Both the position numbers and the translations under genes were made by a program. DNA of 63,691 nucleotides, filler included, from Pelomyxa schiedti (Eukaryota > Protista > Evosea): NCBI GenBank assembly GCA_020536535.1. It is 10 parts of 10 records of this genome, joined end to end, with 100 filler letters (N's around TTAATTAATTAA, not from the genome) between each part and the next. Parts side by side here need not be neighbours in the genome. Positions count along the whole stretch, not along the records: positions 35,772 to 56,968 come from JAHLWZ010001076.1; 9 more parts are not named here. One strand, 5' to 3'. This document shows, one piece after another, positions 40,197 through 53,353 of the stretch (position 1 is the stretch's first letter; each line of letters starts with the position of its first letter). The notes under the pieces were generated by a model. The model was not told where the DNA came from, made no database searches, and saw nothing but the letters and a program-made list of their open reading frames with translations.

Positions 40197-40890
40197 TTTT
40201 TCAAGCCAAGGATTTGTAGCCGTGTGGGATGTGGGGTTTGATCCAGTAAGCCCAGATAACGAGGAAGAAGAGAGAGCAAATCACTGCTATGGAAATGAGA
40301 GCTCCTCTGGTTGAGATAGGAACTCCAGCCTTGGCCTATTTGAAAGTGGAATGGATAAGTGTGAAGTGAGGAGTAAATTACTACGGACCGTTGTTTGATG
40401 AGCACAGAGTACACATTCTTCACACTCTTCGAAGTCAGGTACATGGCAGGGCTCACAGAAATATGTGTGGTTGTATGCCTGCTGTTCAATAGTACGAGGA
40501 AAACTGGCTCCGCACTAAGGAAATAAAACGTAAGAACCGGCTGTGCAAGATAGCATTGAAATTGGTACCTGAAGCGTTGCCCCCTCGGATGCTCTTTTCT
40601 ATGTGATATTAGACATCATAACACAATGCGAAAGTAATTGTGTATCTAAGTAAGAGATACAGAGGGCTAAAACACCTTGCACGCCGGGCACCAAGCGCAA
40701 CCACGGCACTCGGGAACCGAACATGGAGAACAGATCTGGCCGAGATTTTCCGCGTTGTCGAGGAGGCAGTCCATGCTGCAGGGTCCTTTGGTGGGCCGGG
40801 TCAGGGTGACGAGCGTGGTCTCGCGGGACGAAGTTGCTACGATGAAGATCGCGGCAATGACTAATGCGGTGCTAAATACGATGTTCTCGG
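40197..40890 (-). CDS. Small Cys-rich membrane protein (start codon not identified)
   Basis: Hydrophobic N-segment, CSPCSVPECRGCAWCPACK and CEPCHVPDFEECEECVLC repeats, C-terminal TM (LISIAVICSLFLVIWAY), GT-AG introns. Confidence 0.45.
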
Positions 40891-41290
40891 CATGTTAACA
40901 GGCAGACGTCGATAGTGGTGGGCCCTTGTCCGGCTTCAAAGATCCCTTTATTACGTATTGGATTTAAATATTTTATGATTGTGAAACTTTTCGTTGCCCT
41001 TTTCTTTTCTTCTTGACAGGCAATTTCGCAGGTGCAACTCAGAAAACGCAGAAAAAATTTCCTCTTGCGAAAGCTCCTCGGAAATTGTTCCAAGATCTTT
41101 CCAGCACCTCCCGTGCATGAGATCCATCAACACCCCCACACCCCTTCCATTCCGCTCATTCCCCCCATGTCCAGGGGTGATGATGTCCAAGGTTCATTCC
41201 ATACACCCCCTCTCATACATTTACTTAGAGTTTGTTGTCTCAGAACGACGTTTCGTTGTGCCTCTGTGGGAAAATAGAAAAAAAAAACCA

Positions 41291-42911: not shown

Positions 42912-45057
42912 TTACTTGATTTTGATGAAGGTGATGCCATAGTATAGGCCCGGAATGGTGAAACTGACAGCAACACCCGAGGCATCAGTCTCAAAGTAAA
43001 GCCAGTTGCCCATTCCCGCCGTCATTTCAATGAGCATGCACCCAGCAGAGGGGGATTCCTGTGCAAACAGCGTCACGTTCTATTATCATACCAAATGAAT
43101 GGGATGCATGAACATACAGCATATTCTATTGCCTGGAAGGTAAGGTCCCCATAATAGACCATAAGGAAGTCACTTGTAGATACTCCGGGAAACTTTGCAT
43201 GCAGCTGGCCGTTTGTTTCCTTGACTAGAACAAAAGAGGGACTGCCTTCCATCTGGTACACCCCAGCAAAATTATCAGGGTTAACTGCCAACTGCGGAGC
43301 TTGTTGCTTTGCAGAGATGTATGATGTGAATTCCGGCACAAAGAAGTCTGATGCAGTGACCTGATAGACTGTCTGATCAAGTTCTTTTGTGTTCTTGTTA
43401 GGGAAAAAAAAGAACCTTTCCAGTAGTTGATCGTTATTGTTGTAATATTATTGGTGGTGTTGTATAAGCATAAACATACGGCCAGGAGCATTCATAAGTA
43501 CAGCAATTCCTAGATGCAAGTCGGGGAATATTGTTACAATACAGCCATAGCCTTGAACGTCTCCGCTCTTGGTAATCAGGAGATGGTCGTCATAGTAGTA
43601 AGTCTCCCATGGCATTCCTGATTGATGCGTGGGTTGCGAATGAGAGGTTTGAAGTTGTGGGAGAGTTGTTTGTTATGTACCATAGCCACTTTTCCCTTCG
43701 GGATTCCATTGACCAGGGTGAAGCCATTCACGTATTGTGGTACCATCTAGTACTTGTCCAGAACTTGGTGAATATGGCTCATACCAATTCAGTAAGAATT
43801 TCATAAACTTGGACATATCAGCTGTAAAAACAGTTAATTTCAAAATTAAGATTCAGGTAAAAGCGCACATGCAGTAGAGTACATCTGACCACTAGGAGAA
43901 ACCCAATTCATGTTATTAATTGGTACCTCATAACCTCTCGCCATACGGGAAATCACATCCTTACAAAAGTTACTCATTTACCGGGAGAAATTATGCATAC
44001 AGAAGTGTAATCAAAGCCAGTTGAAGACATTCCAAGTGGTGATAGTATGGATTTTGAAACATAATCTTCATAGGTCTGGCCAAAAGTTGGTTCGAGAAGT
44101 CGACCTAAACCGGTATTAATGGTTGAAGAAATTACAAAATTAATATATGTACCAATAAGTCCATAGGCAAGATTGGAGTAGGTTGGACGAGAGCCGGGAG
44201 GAAGGATAAGTGGAATAGTTTTTAACCTGTGGAAAGACATGAAACAAAACACACGAATTGCATTGCCCACCTCTCAAGGATAGTAGCAGTGTCTTCTGTG
44301 CATTCCTCAGTAGAAGTAGGGGGCACGCAAGGGGGAGCTCGTGGTAAACCAGCAACTTGCGAGGCTGCTTGCCTATATTGATAAATTAAATGGAATAAGG
44401 AAGAGGCAGAAGGAAATACCTCCATGTTACACCGTCCCTTGTAGTTGCCCAAGGATTGGGCATGGAAAAGGATGGTACCAGTTTAGAAATGGGATCATCC
44501 AAGGAAACAATATTTCCAAGATCACGTTGTTGTAGCATAGCCAAAACCGCAAAGAGCTTGCTAACAGAGCCGATTCTATGTAAAATTAAGCACAGTTTGT
44601 CAGGGTTTTTGTGAAGGTGTACCGGAAAATTGTATCTGGTCCTGGAGCAACTCCTTCTTGGGTAGCTCCAAAGCCTCCAAACCACAAGTCCTTGTCCTGG
44701 TACACCACCTGCATGGCAACTGCAGTGTGGTTGTAAAGAATTCTAGTTGCCTCCACCTCAGCAGCCAGAGCCTCAAACATTAGAACGAGCTCAGGGTCAG
44801 TGGCACTCACATTGTCCACTGGGAAAAGTCTCCAAGGACACCTTGAAAAAAAGAACTATTAAACGTGCTTATGCCGACAATGAAAATACTGATTCAAACA
44901 AAGTTCACACAATTAGTGTAACACCAAATGCAACATACGTCCAGTAGTCCCCAAATAACAATGACTCAGCTGAAGTAGCTGCTCTTCCATTTGCACCAGA
45001 ACAAAAACTGGTTGTCACCACCAGTACTGCAATTGTCACCAAAAACCAACCAGACAT
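42912..45057 (-). CDS. Secreted beta-lactamase-family (class C-like) serine hydrolase; multi-exon
   Basis: Signal peptide, FR|IGSVSK (SxxK), SLDDP, PGSRPTYSNLAY (YxN), ILSPLGMSST, and TKSG as the third motif. Confidence 0.88.
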
Positions 45058-45320
45058 TTCAAACTTTGCTTGACTCTTGTTCCCAAATGTTTATTTGTTG
45101 CTGTGTTGTTGTTTTCCTCATCGTTTCTCTTTGATCGTATAAAAGCACGAATCACACCACAAAAAAAAGCTACCGCATGGGTGCTTTTGTTCGATACAAA
45201 AAAAACGAAGAGGAAAAAAAAAGTACAACTTTTTTTCTTTCTCCAAAAAACGACCAGATGGGTGCCTTTTTTTTTTTCCTCTACAACAAAATAAAAACGA
45301 ACAGAGTCGGTCTGAGAGTC

Positions 45321-48300
45321 TCAGGGTCTTTTTTGTTGGTACCGAGGAGCGTCCCACTGAGTGTCATACACAGAGTTCTGGAATATGACTCTCCAATGTC
45401 TGTTTGGAATTCCCTCCCATCTGATTGGATTCATAGTTGTCCTGTTGCACACCACGAACTTCCAGTAGAATGAGAACCCCACCATGAGGTTCAGAACCAC
45501 GGTCCACCATCCTCCCTCACAGCGGGTCATAGCCGTGCCCCGCGAGGGTGTCCATGTGCCTAATTCCGGAATGCTGCCGCATACAACAATGCACTGGTCA
45601 GCTGCTGCATGGTAGTGAATCGAGAATTGTAGCTTGGCCGGAATTCTGCCGCAGGGATCAACTAGGTCGCCGGTGAGCTTGCCGATGTATGGTAGCATGC
45701 AGAGCCAGCAGAATTGATGCTTGCAGTGAGAGCATGACATGTGGCTGCACCCTCCATCTTTTTGTATTAGGGTTCGGCATTTGGGACACGGCCGCGCATT
45801 AGTGGATAGCCACTGAAAGGGGAAAAAATCAGAATTGTTTGGTTGGAAAGAATTTTAGGGTGTATAATGCTTTTACCTGGGTTGATAGGTGAGTCTCCTC
45901 CCCAAGCCTTTTTTCTTTTCTTTTCTCTGCTTGATCGATAAAAATCATTTTTGAGATATCAGAACACCTAGTAATATGTTGGATCCTTTTGCTGATTGAA
46001 GGACTTACGATGTTGCTGGGTGATACTCAAGAAAACATTTCACACAAAAGTGAAATCCACACTCACTGCAGATAGCATCGTCGCACGTAGCAAAACCTCT
46101 GTAGTTGCACTTGGGACAACAGACAAAACCATCAATATTACTCAGTCCTTGTCGAAGCGTACTTTGCTCAAATGCTGCTTTGTCTTTAATAGAAGCTCTA
46201 AAAGTAGGATCAATGGAATGCTGGAGAAGGGAGGAAGTATACAGAACGTCATAGTACGAGGCAATACCAATACAGCCACGTTTAGGGCAACGAGGATGCC
46301 CAGAATCATTGTTTTTGAACCACTGATCCAAGCAGTCAAGGCAAAACCTTTGGAGATTAGAAATTCTCGAAGAGGGATCTTGCATACGCATGACCACAGC
46401 GGCTCAAAGAAAGAAGGTCAGTCTCTTCAAGGCATATCTCACATATTCCTTTGACTGGGGGTGAAGGAGTTGGTTCTGCAAGCTCGTTGAATGAAGTGAT
46501 TTTCGAGTCCACTTTCAAATTGACAAGAAGACCCTGAAGGGAACTGAAAGAATTGAGTTTTGAGGGAGAATGCATGTCAAAAAACATACCTTCGAAGGGG
46601 GTTTGTGAGGAAACGTACAAGCTGGAAGTTATTGTTTTTCCTGGCATAATCAATTGGGGTCATGGCGGGGAGGTCGTTATGAGGCTGGCATAAAATGTTA
46701 CTTTCCGCTCCGGAATCCATAAGCAATTTGCATATTGCGGGGTAATTCCCAGCACAAGCTGCATGCAGAGGTGTTTCACCAAATGGAGGAAGTACTGCAC
46801 GTGCATTTGCACCACGGCTCAAAAGAACAATGACTCCTTCAATGCACCCACGTGAACACAAGAGGTAGAGAACGCTTGGAGGAATTCTCGGAAAGAGAAC
46901 ACTCGGCCTTCCAACACCCGAAGGTATTGGCGGAAGTTGTGAGGGATCTATATCAGCTTGTGGGGCTGCCCGGGCAAAACGGATAAACTGTGTGGAGTTC
47001 AATTTTCCATTGCAGAGGCAGAGGGTGGCCCAGTCCAGGCAGGAAGGTTTACATTTGTAGGTTTTCAGAGTTCCTTGGTCATCACACATGCAGCCCCAAT
47101 CCTCTTTAAAATCCCGTGTGCAAAGTTGCTCTAGGGCATCATCTCGAGTGTTTTCAAGTAATAATTGCAGATATGGTGTCGTTTTGGTTCCTTTTATAAC
47201 CGCATCAGAAAGAACACGTACTAAGGCTGGCGAGTGTTGCCCAGAGCGGGATCGACTTGACGATAGCATTGATGCAGCAGCCTCTATTGTGGAAGACTTA
47301 AATCTGAGCAGTAAGTCCACAGTTGCAGGATAAGTGTCAACTGCCCAAGCGAGGGGACCACCCCTATTGGGGTCAACTCCAGAGCTGAGGAGAAGTTCCA
47401 CGGCCTCAGGATTCCAACTCAGGGCAAATACTATGGGTGGCAGCCCATTTATAACAGGAATAGGGATACCTCGCAAGTCCAAAGGAAGGGTGATGGGATC
47501 CAAAGTGGAAGGAAGGGGCACAGTCATCTGGATGGAATTATCAGTTTCTACCTTTGCTGTTGTTGCTGTACTGGCTGTAGGATCCGTAGGTGATGTGGAG
47601 ATAGGTTGACTGGGTGGTGATACAACAGGGGTAGTGCTCTTGAGGAGGGCCTTAAGTAATGTAATGTTGCGGTGTTGTAGGGCAGCTTCAAGTGCCACTA
47701 TTTGATAACAACCATTAGACTTAGAGAGATTCTCCCGGGGAATTGGTGGTAGTTTTTTAATTTCGTCTAGAACTTCCTGGACGTTGTTCTTTTTGACCTT
47801 AAGTAGGAGGGATGCTCTTTGACCTGGAGTCAAGATAAAAGTAGTCTTTTTCTGGGGCTTTTGGATCTCTGCGATACAAATTCGTGGGAGGGGGGATGGA
47901 AGTGGTTCAGGGTTCTCGATTACTTCTGGGAATGTTGGAAGTTTACTGGTTGGTATTACACTTTTTTGTTTGAAAAAGTCAGGAAAGCAGTGAAATAAAA
48001 GAAGTAAGCAAACGTTTTATTTGGAGCCGCATAAAATAGTCTAGCAAGCTGGGAAAGAGTCAAAATTCCTTTTGAGTAACATGTAGCTCCCAATTCCAGA
48101 CAAGAAACAGGACAGCTCCAACGAGAGAGGCTGTCAAAGTGCATAAACTGTTCCAGCTCCTTTGAATTTGTTGCAGAGAGCAGCCACTTGATGACATCAC
48201 TAATTGTGGGTTGTGGGTCTGGAGTTGAAGATGAAGGTGTAGGAGTAGAAGAAACCGATGACGAAGAGGCTGACGTGGAAGATGAATTGGTAGCAGCAGC

Positions 48301-49461
48301 AGTAGAAGAAGAAGCAGAAGAATTAGTAGCAGCAGCAGCAGCAGCAGAAGAAGAAGAAGAAGAAGAAGAAGAAAGGGGTGGAGGAGTTTTTGTGGAATCA
48401 CTTGTAGGAGAATTCGCATTAACTGCTGAAAAATCAGCACCAATCCTCAGGGCACGATGCAGCGCCGGGCAGTTACTTGTGGATAGATTCTGTTCCACAA
48501 CAGAACATTCCTCAACGGGACTGGCACCAGCATGCAACAGAGGCAGAACGCAAGCAGGGCTGATGTCTACTGCCCACGGCAGCGGCGTCCCATCATGGGG
48601 ATCGGCGCCCGCTTGCAAAAGCAAAGAAACGGCCCTCGGGCACCAGGACACCGCAACAACAAGAGGCCTCACGCCATTGATGCTGGGCAAAGGGACTCCG
48701 CGCAAGTCCAGGGGCAAAGGGATTACGGAAATCTTTGGGTGAGGCGTGGCCTTTGGTGCAGCCTTGCCCGGTGCCGACGACGAGGAAGCAGAAGCAGAAG
48801 CAGAAGCAGAAGCAGAAGCAGAAGCAGAAGCAGAAGCAGAAGCAGAAGCAGAAGCAGAAGCAGAAGCAGAAGCAGAAGCAGAAGCAGAAGTGGGCGAGGG
48901 AGGAGAAGCTGTTGATGTAGAATTGCCGGAAGTAGCCGTGTCGGGTTTTGTCTCTGATGTAGAAGCTGCCGTCGTGGGTGATGTTGTTGCCGTTGACGTC
49001 GCTGCTGGTGTTGGTGTTGGTGTTGGTGTTGGTGTTGGTGTTGGTGTTGGTGTTGGTGTTGGTGTTGGTGTTGGTGTTGGTGTTGGTGTTGGTGTTGATG
49101 ACGAGGCTGGTGGTGGTTGAGCTGGGGGAAGACGCTGGGCGAGGAGTGCCTCGAGGCAGGGCATGGAGCGGTGGACGAGGCAGAGCCTGAGGGCCAGGGT
49201 GTAGACCGAGCACGAGTCGGACTGCACGGGGTCCATGAACGCCGCGATGGACCAGTGGGGCCCGCGGCCCCCAGCCAGCACCCCCATCAGCCGCGACGCC
49301 TTGTTTTCCACTACGCAGTGCGTGAGGGACGAGGTCATTCGGGGCGTGAGCTTGGCGAATTGCGCGGGCTTCGTGGCCGCCTGCGCCGTGGAGGTGGACG
49401 CAGGGGCCGAGGCTGAGGTTGTGGTGGGAGGTGGAGAAGACACGGGCGGAGTGGTTGTCAT
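45321..49461 (-). CDS. Ankyrin-like repeats + RBR (RING1-IBR-RING2) E3 ubiquitin ligase + C-terminal CBM20
   Basis: GETPLHAAC ankyrin; CEIC..CGH..FCLDC..CPKRGC (RING1); CPKC..CSECGFHFCVKC..H (IBR); CPKCRTLIQKDGGCSHMSCSHCKHQFCWLC (RING2); VVCGSIPELGTW...GGWW...WKFV...RWEGIPNR (CBM20). Confidence 0.85.
48784..49097. repeat. Coding hexanucleotide microsatellites (GAAGCA)n and (GGTGTT)n encoding (SA)n and (TP)n on the minus strand
   Basis: Perfect arrays at about 48785-48889 and 49007-49097 within the RBR gene. Confidence 0.9.
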
Positions 49462-49843: not shown

Positions 49844-51369
49844 GTTTTTTTTTAGCAGCCTATGCCGGGATTTCACTCAAGAAAAACAAAGACTGGTTTT
49901 CCGAAAACGCGCTTTTCGCACTCCCCAGGCTCGCTCTGGATTACATCGTGGATCTTCTAAATCTTCCCGACTGCGCGTCCTTTTCGCAGACGTGCCACGC
50001 GGCCCTGTACCTTTGTGCACCTTCACTTCGAAAAGATGACATGATAGACGGCACCAACGACGGAATTCGCGCCTCGTGCGATGTGGAGCGGACCACGAAA
50101 TGCCGCGCCTTCATGGTGTTTAATCCGTTATGTGGGGTCGATCCTGAGGTCAAGAATAGCATCTGCGCCGACGCCATTGGAGATCTCGTGCGGGCGGCGC
50201 CAAATTTGGAGCACCTGAATCTGCTGGGATATGAGCCGGCGTGCTGGGTTTCGTGGACGGGAACTCACGTCAGCGCGATGTCCGCTTTGCATTTGCTGAA
50301 CGCCCCGAAGCTGAGAATCCTGAAACTTGACTTCGAGCCCGAGGGGGACCACCCGGCCAAACGAGAACTCGCGGCCGTGAAGAAGCTATTTTTGGAGAGA
50401 GGGAGACAGCTTAGTGCGATCAAAATGTATTGTGACGATTCCAGCTTTGCTTTTTCGAAGCCGGCAATCCAAGGTCTGATAGAAGCCGCAACCAAATATG
50501 GTCCTCTCATGAATTTGAAGGCGTTAGACTTTTCTATTTCGGCTTGTGACCTATATTCTCTGGCAAATGCTTGTGGATGTGGCATTGCGGTAGCTCCTCA
50601 TATAAAAACACTTCGGGTGTACAGAAGGGATGAAGAGACTCTCCCGCCACATTGGGCCGCAGTATTGCAAGTTGCTTTCCCATCTCTGACACATATTAAG
50701 TGCTATGGAAAACTGTGGGCTGAAATTGTTATTGATTGTCCTATACTAGAGGACACAGAGAATAGGGTTATGTACGACACAATTCCGATTTTGCTCTCTG
50801 CAACACATCCACTTGGGTTGAAGAAAATTTCCGTTAACAGGAGGAACTGCAAGCCGCGGCTGAAATTTCCTGACATCGCTAATCTTCTTACTCTGTGTCC
50901 ACTCACCACCGAGTTATTTTTTGGCTGTGAATGCCTATCCGTGGATGTGGCACAGGCACTTGCCTCTCTCAGGCACCTCAGGAAGATTTGTTGGGTCTTT
51001 CACTACCCAGATTCTTGCATTAATGGAGTGACTTCCATGGACAGCCTTCCTGAAAAGTCAATCGCAGCTCTGGAACACTCCACCGCAAGAGTTAAACAGT
51101 GGAATTCTGGAACAGGTGTACTCTCCAAACTTCTGCACCTACCTATGTTTTCTGAATTGGAAGAAGTGGACATTGTAATGTGGGGTCAATCGGGCTCAGG
51201 ACAAGCAGCACAAGACGACATCCGATTACTGATGAGGGTGTGTGCCAGCACCATCAAAAAGGTGACACTCCCTGGTGATCTCAGTACCCGTTTGCAGCCT
51301 ATCGTAGAGTCCCTCAGTGCACTGAAAGTAGTGGAGAACACTATGGGCAGTCTCACTATGAGCCTTTAA
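49844..51369 (+). CDS. F-box / leucine-rich-repeat (RNI-like) protein; first exon not identified
   Basis: LFALPRLALDYIVDLLNLPDCASFSQTC (F-box) lies in frame with the 473-aa ORF, which has APNLEHLNL, APKLRILKL and FPSLTHI repeats. Splice acceptor at about 49843. Confidence 0.7.
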
Positions 51370-51459: not shown

Positions 51460-53353
51460 TCAGTAGAGGTGAGAGCTTGTAGCTGTGCATCCAGGTTCTG
51501 ATGTGAAGGAAGCAGCATTTGTACTGGTACATCCAGGTGCGGTGCTGGTGCATCCTGGTGCTGTGCTTGTACATCCTGGTGCTGAGGTGGGCGCCGACTG
51601 TTTGTGGAAGTATACAATGGCGTGCACCAAAACCTGAGAAGGCGTGAAGCACACTAGCTGATTATGGGTGGGTGTGGAATTCTCGCTGGCAGGAACCCAA
51701 GCTTGGCCTGTAACTCCACTTCCTGAGAAGGGAGCCAAAGGGATGAAGTGGGAATCATAGTTCTTGTAAGCCGAGTTTCCTTGTAGCTTGTGAGACTCCC
51801 AGTCGGTTGGGATGACAGGATAAACGCTCCCACATAGCACCCAGCAGAGTGCTACTGCGTCCTTCCCTTGGCAAGTGACTTCCACGGAATCCGTGAGATG
51901 AACTCCATTTCCAAATCCAATGTCAGAGAATTGTGCTGAGGAAAACCCTTGATTGCAAATAGTTTCCGCTTGTTCACAAGTTAAACCGTACCACATCAGA
52001 GATACCGGCACTGCCTTGGGTTGAGGCTGGTGTACCTGGGACAAAGTGTGAAATACATAACACAGAGAATGAATTTACCGCAACAAGAGACTTGAATCTA
52101 TCCATTATTGCTTTTCTATGTGCCAAGCCGGCTTCTGCTTCCCAAGATGCCTGAAACTCTGGCTTCCCATTCCGTATTTGAAGAAGCTCGAAATGGCTTT
52201 CAAAGGCCTTACGGAGCTGCGGATTTGAAACAAGTTTAATTTTGTCTATTTCATATCTAGTGCTCGTTGAGTGCTAGCTTCAAAAGGCAAAACACACCTC
52301 CCCTTTGATGTTAATTGGAACAAATCCACAATTTTCTTGTGCTCTGCTGGACCAATAGATTTCTCCGTGAGAGGGATTGTTGAATAATTTCCCATGGAAA
52401 ACCAGAAGTCCTTCAACTCATCGCCAAGCAGGTCCACAGCAAATGTCCATGGAAACTCTGTCCACATAGGATACAGTCAGAAAGATTTAATAGCATCAAG
52501 AGGAATGCATACTTTCAGGTACAAAAGTGCAAGTCGGAGGATTTGCCTGTGGTGTTGGGCCGCTGGATTGTTGTGGATTCCCTTGGGATTGCTGCTGTAT
52601 GTGCTGCTGCAATTGAAGAATCTGCTGCTGAGACTGCAATAGCAACTGTTCCAGCTGCCTCTGCCTCTCTCTGTCAGATACCATTAGTCCACATTGACCA
52701 CATAGAGAAAATCCACAGGCGCCACAGCGTGTGAATTGTCCCACAATATCCCTGCAGCATACGTCGCAGAGCGGGGAGAGTGCACCCCCGGGTGTTGGGG
52801 AAATTAAGGACGAGGTAAGAGCCGTCCCACAAGTACACTTGTTGGGAGTCAGGCCCGCAAGGGGAACCATTCTCGGCGGCGGGCGGCTATCAACGACCAC
52901 GGCAGGAGTCGGAGTCGGAGTCGGAGTCGGCGTAGGCGTAGGCGTAGGCGGCGAGGCAGGCGGCATAGACGCCGGGCCACTAGCGCTCAATGGAGGAGTC
53001 GACTCAGACGGAGGGAACTGAGGAGGGGGCTGATAAGACATGGAGGGGTCCCACCCCGGCCACGCGCCCCAGGGGGGCGGAGGGCCCGGGGGGCCGCCCC
53101 AGGGCGGATGGTGTGGGTGGGGCCCGTGGTGCGGGGGCGGGCCGCCGGGCCAGCCAGGGGGAGGGTGGCCGTGGTGGGGAGGCGGGCCGTGGTGCGGCCC
53201 GCAGTGGGGGTCGCCCCACGGCGGGGGGGGAGGCGGGCCGCCGGGCCAGGGCGGGCAGCCTGGGGGAGGCCCGTGGTGGCCGTGGTGGGGAGGCGGTCCC
53301 CCGCCGTGCCATGGTGGCCCGTGGTGATGCCCTCTCATGTCGTGGCTACACAA
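51460..53353 (-). CDS. PARP-like ADP-ribosyltransferase-fold protein with H/P/G/W-rich N-terminus and ZZ-like zinc finger
   Basis: LMWYG...ICNQGF...GFGNGVHLT...LCWVLCG...YDSH...NQLVCF..SQV follows the PARP catalytic core; CDVC..RCGACGFSLCGQC zinc finger. Confidence 0.75.

Follow-up and report, generated by a model that had tools for sequence, protein, structure and literature searches.

An RBR-type E3 ubiquitin ligase gene with a built-in CBM20 domain in Pelomyxa schiedti

The window analyzed here is a stretch of 63,691 nucleotides, filler included, from the genome of the amoeba Pelomyxa schiedti (assembly GCA_020536535.1). A gene on its minus strand encodes, in one polypeptide, an RBR (RING1-IBR-RING2) E3 ubiquitin ligase and a CBM20 starch/glycogen-binding domain; from the N- to the C-terminus, the order is: two ankyrin-repeat modules, RING1-IBR-RING2, CBM20. 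The fusion had been proposed by a sequence-only reading of the window, and is now supported by hidden Markov model (HMM) scoring, fold prediction, conserved residues and spliced RNA, as well as by paralogues or orthologues in which it is kept. As to its function, the product is, on balance, probably an expressed E3 docked on glycogen or a similar α-glucan, where it would ubiquitinate targets at the granule.

Results

The last exon and its transcript

RING2, CBM20 and the stop codon (TGA, 45323-45321) are encoded in the last exon of the gene (45321..45812, minus strand, as for all features of the gene reported below), in one uninterrupted frame. The translation (window:45324-45812:-) is 163 residues long, contains no internal stop, and reads WLSTNARPCPKC...GGCSHMSC...FCWLC...DPCGRIPAKLQF..., followed by GSIPELGTW, GGWW, WKFV and WEGIPNRHW; all the motifs quoted in the sequence-only reading (GGCSHMSC, GSIPELGTW, GGWW, WKFV, WEGIPNR) are therefore present. 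Six residues separate the last zinc ligand of RING2 from the start of CBM20. The range previously indicated for the fusion, 45321-46460, correctly has the stop codon and the beginning of RING1 as its limits; its description as one exon holds for RING2 plus CBM20, but not for the entire range, where RNA shows four introns.

Public runs containing the stretch include two DNA data sets (2021) and two single-cell RNA libraries (2023), all from one study and filed as 'protist metagenome', in agreement with the P. schiedti project PRJNA672820 (PMC10579272); RNA and DNA contigs were examined over positions 45100-48500. An 882-nt spliced RNA contig (run X4, record 11) links 46335-46243, 46197-46007, 45965-45877 and 45812-45304, spanning the second half of RING1, the IBR domain, the linker, RING2, CBM20, the stop codon and some of the 3' untranslated region (3'UTR). 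Since the RBR exons and the CBM20 exon are linked in spliced RNA contigs, which continue past the stop, CBM20 belongs to the RBR transcript: its absence from that transcript, which would have spoken against the fusion, was not observed. The last exon is covered by RNA contigs at 45304-45812 and 45279-45664, and the 3'UTR reaches at least 45279. At the DNA level, an 11.5-kb contig spans the locus with zero differences.

The RBR core

Domain searches were performed exon by exon, using the closest annotated relative, the P. schiedti protein Pelo_8059 (P0001), as a full-length proxy for the joined protein. RING1, IBR and a RING2 with the Cys-x-His arrangement are all present, and the protein belongs to the RBR superfamily. 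In RING1 the C3HC4 ligands (C-x2-C ... C-x-H-x2-C-x2-C ... C-P-x3-C) are found across an RNA-verified splice. Because intron 3 splits this domain, Pfam yields mere RING1 fragments in the window; the equivalent region of P0001 matches zf-RING_2 (E 4.9e-8). The IBR domain is recognized by Pfam IBR with E 1.6e-5 and 25.3 bits (cut-off 24.3).

RING2 (Rcat), from its first Cys to the last zinc-ligand Cys, occupies 45651..45788, and is matched by Pfam IBR_1/IBR at residues 5-43 of the last-exon product (E 1.9e-13). The codon of the catalytic Cys is at 45749-45747, and a His follows two residues on, at 45743-45741. The best RING2 relatives of solved structure are ARIH1 (E 8e-12) and ARIH2 (E 8e-11), where GGCSHM is in register with their GGCNHM, whereas the RING2 of HOIL-1 is a marginal match (E 0.0098).

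Membership in two RBR subfamilies was considered and rejected. An Ariadne assignment fails on the C-terminal autoinhibitory Ariadne domain (PF19422), for which no match is found after RING2, the protein ending 15 residues past CBM20; true Ariadne matches retrieved by the same search (P0027, P0054) do carry that domain. A HOIL-1-type assignment fails on the N-terminus, as neither a UBL nor a RanBP-type (NZF) finger is found by Pfam in the window exons, and on the marginal score of the HOIL-1 RING2.

The CBM20 domain

The C-terminal module (45369..45632, residues 61-148 of the last-exon product) is assigned to Pfam CBM_20 (PF00686) with E 6.6e-15 and 55.1 bits (cut-off 23.3), over profile positions 4-93 of 97. 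The AlphaFold2 (AF2) model of the last-exon product has a mean predicted local distance difference test score (pLDDT) of 88.8, with values of 96-98 across CBM20. The HMM and structure checks called for by the sequence-only reading thus both return a CBM20. The top Foldseek match in the Protein Data Bank (PDB) is the complex of the STBD1 CBM20 with maltotetraose (8x8k; TM score 0.89 by target, root-mean-square deviation 1.5 Å); later matches are the CBM20s of GPCPD1, glucoamylases, cyclodextrin glucanotransferases (CGTases) and β-amylase. Each of the 50 listed matches is either a CBM20 domain or an amylolytic enzyme that contains one.

The roles of the binding-site residues in the glucoamylase domain are well established. 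When CBM20 is aligned pairwise to that of Aspergillus niger glucoamylase (1AC0), the residues of site 1 (W543, K578, W590, E591, N595) are identical in five cases out of five. Comparison of the CBM20 part with that of P0001 gives a pN (nonsynonymous differences) of 0.28 versus a pS (synonymous differences) of 0.74, the latter being saturated, which indicates purifying selection on this part of the sequence. The protein thus carries a bona fide CBM20 with site 1 intact, and is predicted, from residues and model, to bind α-glucan.

Related genes and origin of the fusion

The last-exon product was used in a HMMER scan of 1.84 billion protein cluster representatives, which gave 5201 matches; the best 150 were checked for both domains. 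Among these, with Pfam applied to the candidates, P0001, P0003 and P0009 are the only proteins to combine the two domains. When 162 fetched proteins were scanned locally with phmmer, the combination was found only in the same three and in P0151. Alignments of P0027, P0092, P0073 and P0054 extend beyond RING2, yet no CBM20 is detected in them by Pfam. Proteins in which CBM20 matches occur in multiple stretches are amylases, glucanotransferases or arrays of CBM20, none of which contains an IBR, and a feature search of the ESM Atlas returned only sub-threshold CBM20 leads (score 0.80).

Three of the retrieved proteins are from P. schiedti itself: Pelo_8059 (P0001), KAH3766962.1 'RNF14' (P0003) and Pelo_6410 (P0151), all composed of two ankyrin modules, RBR and a C-terminal CBM20. 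P0001 and P0003 were traced to contigs of the same assembly, GCA_020536535.1 (loci L001 and L002, respectively), and at both loci RING2 and CBM20 are again in a single exon; at L001 the preceding intron is at the identical place. No relative is nearer to the window copy than P0001, the two being 66% identical over the last exon and 54% over the ankyrin exon; GGCSHM and the residues of site 1 are both retained in P0001. Searches did not retrieve the window protein itself from the annotated P. schiedti proteins; its gene is most likely a fourth paralogue. In P0003, CBM20 is interrupted by about 30 inserted residues.

Outside P. schiedti, the 117-aa CBM20 'protein' P0017 is the last exon of another gene, ordered ankyrin-RING1-IBR-RING2-CBM20, in the Logan contig ERR12015700_595932 (L004:1-2810); GGCSHI and all site-1 residues are kept. 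This gene is eukaryotic, with short introns, and a prokaryote-style caller had split off from it a 94-aa IBR 'protein' and the 117-aa CBM20 one. Since such gene calling splits them, fusions of this kind are under-counted in metagenome protein sets. P0009, from Rhizamoeba saxonica (Tubulinea), is a complete open reading frame (ORF) of a Trinity transcript assembly, which includes a RanBP2-type finger, RBR, a linker of about 40 residues and a partial CBM20. Two more sequences from EukProt, the source of P0009 as well, were also noted: P0280, a relative of P0009, ends after what appear to be the first two CBM20 strands, and P0281 is an RBR protein which also has a match to NHL, the repeat type of malin.

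A protein of environmental origin, P0011, has ankyrin repeats and RBR, and stops immediately past DPCGK, with no CBM20; similar relatives exist. Because, by pairwise scores, the Pelomyxa RBRs are closer to these CBM20-less ankyrin-RBR proteins than to the Rhizamoeba protein, CBM20 was probably added onto an ankyrin-RBR ancestor, and the Pelomyxa and Rhizamoeba fusions may be independent.

The sequence-only reading did not know this architecture as described. No paper on an RBR-CBM20 fusion was found in the literature searched, but unremarked database entries do exist, namely the three P. schiedti proteins and the R. saxonica transcript: RBR-CBM20 relatives sit in public databases unnamed or misnamed, those from P. 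schiedti being annotated as 'hypothetical' or 'RNF14'.

Gene structure and N-terminal modules

By summing exon lengths and phases, the gene comprises about 1278 codons from the ATG at 49461, in 7 exons. Exon 1 (48014..49461), whose start codon (ATG, 49461-49459) and donor site are deduced from the open frame, contains low-complexity runs of Thr, Pro, Ser and Ala, followed by a first ankyrin-like module (PLDLRG...SW...LLLQAGADP...WAVD), and can be aligned to P0001, P0003 and P0151 over their N-terminus and first module; RNA contigs, examined up to 48500, do not cover this exon. Long in-frame coding repeats of dinucleotide type, (Thr-Pro)n and (Ser-Ala)n, along with Ser/Ala runs, are found in exon 1 at 48290-49200 (minus strand); a simple repeat, also inside this exon, is at 48785-48890. 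The putative intron 1 (47946..48013, 68 nt, GT..AG), read from the sequence, is the sole phase-compatible GT..AG pair linking frame 0 to frame 2.

Exon 2 (46590..47945, 1356 nt) encodes the second module, with canonical ankyrin repeats (Pfam Ank_2 E 2e-14, Ank E 2.7e-13), 54% identical to residues 447-867 of P0001; RNA contigs cover it piecewise at 46590-47465. It is predicted by AF2 (pLDDT 75) as an ankyrin solenoid of helix pairs, with disordered inserts, and its Foldseek matches are exclusively ankyrin or DARPin structures. The ankyrin-like module of exon 1 is another copy of the same module type.

All remaining introns are of the GT..AG type, and their joints are seen in RNA contigs. Intron 2 (46544..46589, 46 nt) is joined in record 6 of run X3, and the loose end of a contig from run X5, belonging to a second study, fits the spliced junction 46544/46589. 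Exon 3 (46388..46543), read through the same X3 contig, encodes a linker and the first half of RING1 (CEIC...CGH). It is followed by intron 3 (46348..46387, 40 nt), within RING1, and by exon 4a (46243..46347), where the second half of this domain (FCLDCLDQW...CPKRGC) is supported by X3 record 6 and X4 record 11. Intron 4 (46198..46242, 45 nt) is in frame and could not be predicted from the ORF alone: it is seen through RNA joints in both X3 and X4. Its excision gives DVLASIKDK, fitting DVLAALKNT of P0001, and improves the match to this closest relative. Exon 4b (46009..46197), also contained in X4 record 11, encodes the IBR domain recognized by Pfam. Next are intron 5 (45968..46008, 41 nt), exon 5 (45877..45967), which encodes the charged IBR-RING2 linker, is present in X4 record 11 and aligns with residues 1015-1048 of P0001, and intron 6 (45813..45876, 64 nt), preceding the last exon. 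The intron density of the gene agrees with that of the P. schiedti genome (PMC8887013).

Discussion

Known systems

The RING1-IBR-RING2 order, the RING2 similarity (E 8e-12 to 8e-10) and the catalytic Cys and His are shared with ARIH1 and ARIH2. In contrast to these, the window protein has no Ariadne and UBA-like domains and features CBM20 after RING2; dependence on a NEDD8-modified cullin is unsupported. N-terminal ankyrin repeats, as found in the window protein, also occur in ANKIB1, which combines them with an Ariadne RBR.

Three other systems connect CBM20 or an RBR ligase to glycogen. In animals, laforin (CBM20 plus phosphatase) with malin (a RING-NHL E3), and STBD1 (a CBM20 glycophagy receptor), follow the same logic, by which CBM20 brings a regulatory activity to glycogen; there, however, CBM20 and ligase are on separate proteins, malin is not an RBR, and no homology to the window protein exists outside CBM20. 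HOIL-1/RBCK1, likewise an RBR ligase, has a functional connection with glycogen and polyglucosan and ubiquitinates glucosaccharides (PMC12203941), but its sequence similarity is weak (E 0.0098) and the window protein has neither its UBL nor its NZF. The engineered pair FKBP-GFP-CBM20 and FRB-HOIL-1L (PMC13345935) also unites CBM20 and an RBR ligase at glycogen; that system is artificial, made of two chains and drug-induced, while the window gene is natural, encodes a single chain and is of another RBR subtype. The only described E3 found with CBM20 in the same polypeptide is RNF213 (PMC11549300), a giant AAA+/RING/RZ-finger ligase of an unrelated class, whose CBM20 is recognized by structure only, is far from the catalytic module, and has an unproven role.

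Proposed function and alternatives

A glycogen-targeted ligase, acting on glycogen-bound proteins or on the glucan, was the function suggested by the sequence-only reading; it appears reasonable and is ranked first here. According to this proposal, CBM20 would anchor the enzyme on particles of glycogen or other α-1,4-glucans; prominent glycogen bodies are a feature of Pelomyxa species. RING1 would accept ubiquitin from an E2 and hand it to the RING2 cysteine, from which it would be discharged onto targets held at the granule. The likeliest are granule-associated proteins, brought by the ankyrin arrays in a way comparable to malin-laforin; less likely, ubiquitin would go to the glucan itself, at a glucose hydroxyl, as with HOIL-1, and with ARIH1 acting on N-acetylglucosamine (GlcNAc). 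As a result, granule proteins would be turned over, or glycogen would be delivered to lysosomes.

A number of observations weigh against this picture, at different levels. For the gene model, RNA support is absent for the start codon and intron 1. In RING2, the second zinc site lacks its customary His ligand and has a conserved D-P-C instead; since this motif is conserved, and the environmental Logan relative has Cys at the position of the Asp, this residue presumably replaces His as the seventh zinc ligand. In CBM20, site 2 (Y527, Y556, W563) is partly kept: only W563 has an equivalent, while Y527 is changed to Ala and Y556 falls in a deletion. Membership in the CBM20 family does not require site 2. 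Among the paralogues, P0003 and P0151 have GGCNLV, with loss of the catalytic His, and lack the second Trp of site 1 (RWE); the family is consequently not uniformly constrained, and these two copies may be pseudo-ligases or neofunctionalised. Finally, mutation of the predicted sugar-binding residues of RNF213 produced no change, and CBM20s outside carbohydrate-active enzymes are not always proven glucan binders (PMC11549300).

A sharper form of the same explanation, rather than a contradiction of it, is that the RING2 Cys transfers ubiquitin directly to the bound α-glucan, forming an oxyester with a glucose hydroxyl and tagging glycogen or polyglucosan for glycophagy. The gap of about six residues between RING2 and CBM20, crossing a conserved DPCGRIPA junction, would set the catalytic site beside the bound chain. 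The Ariadne RBR ARIH1, together with the lectin F-box protein FBS2, which positions the sugar, ubiquitinates GlcNAc, and HOIL-1 ubiquitinates glucosaccharides, although whether it has a sugar-binding site of its own is unsettled (PMC12203941); moreover, induced proximity of HOIL-1L and CBM20 suffices for glycogen to be ubiquitinated in cells and routed to lysosomes (PMC13345935). Yet the RING2 described here is far closer to that of ARIH1/2 than to that of HOIL-1, as the E values given above indicate, ester chemistry is not predicted by anything in the sequence, and the large ankyrin arrays suggest protein substrates, so that direct ligation to the glucan is considered rather unlikely. Two other roles for CBM20 appear improbable. 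It might read α-glucan exposed on or in cytosolic prokaryotic symbionts, prey or damaged phagosomes, which the ligase would then coat with ubiquitin. RNF213 offers a precedent, being an E3 with a CBM20 located in a positively selected region (PMC11549300); P. schiedti hosts cytosolic prokaryotic symbionts and feeds on starch and glycogen (PMC10579272); and the family is expanded to at least 4 divergent copies, two of which have a remodelled CBM20. Against a sensor of foreign polysaccharide, the window copy and its nearest relative hold the canonical starch/glycogen site 1 under purifying selection, the role of the RNF213 CBM20 is a proposed one, and α-glucan exposure by the symbionts is hypothetical. 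CBM20 might, instead, be mainly an intramolecular regulatory or protein-binding module, substituting for the autoinhibitory Ariadne domain, with glucan binding lost or secondary: it is found exactly at the site of that domain, next to an Ariadne-like RING2, and P0003 and P0151 retain it despite the loss of a site-1 Trp. The complete site 1 of the window copy speaks against such a role; in addition, CBM20-less relatives end at DPCGK, which shows that the parent family needs no C-terminal domain.

The possibility that the fusion is an artefact (an assembly chimera, read-through in the gene model, or a pseudogene) is effectively refuted. The genome was obtained from amplified single cells (PMC10579272), a possible source of chimeras. 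However, RING2 and CBM20 lie in the same exon and are read in the same frame, spliced RNA contigs from two runs and from a second study match the locus, as does the DNA contig, and the RING2-CBM20 junction is conserved in five other genes; an assembly chimera was rejected on these grounds. Bacterial contamination was also rejected, on account of the GT..AG introns and of the spliced RNA.

As a natural RBR with a built-in and apparently intact CBM20, the window protein is a 'Rosetta-stone' fusion, which argues that recruitment of an RBR to α-glucan is biologically useful. Ubiquitination of glycogen has been shown only recently, in mammalian tissues; the gene described here is the natural counterpart of the tool that researchers engineered to obtain it, and would extend the link between glycogen and ubiquitin past animals, to anaerobic amoebae with large glycogen bodies. 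The RBR-CBM20 core, of about 330 residues, is a natural compact construct on which the contributions of proximity, glucan-binding site and RING2 chemistry may be tested. Should direct ligation to the glucan prove true, ubiquitin tagging of a storage polysaccharide for lysosomal turnover would exist in Amoebozoa, where it would have originated by domain fusion, possibly twice (Pelomyxa, Rhizamoeba).

Neighbouring sequences

Just downstream of the ligase gene, at 43974-44819 (minus strand), are exons of the serine-hydrolase/β-lactamase family (PF00144, E 1.6e-10 and 1.4e-6). On the same strand, at 40290-40894, ORF pieces are found which are 50-52% identical to the 157-aa gene located after Pelo_8059 in L001 (L001:10202-11042). 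The comparison suggests that the two loci are partly syntenic, as would result from either segmental duplication or orthology. On the other side, a 473-aa ORF (49948-51369, plus strand) is arranged head-to-head with the ligase gene, and is followed, at 52496-53353 (minus strand), by an ORF rich in Pro, His and Gly, whose tail is rich in Cys; at E 0.01, Pfam finds no match in either ORF.

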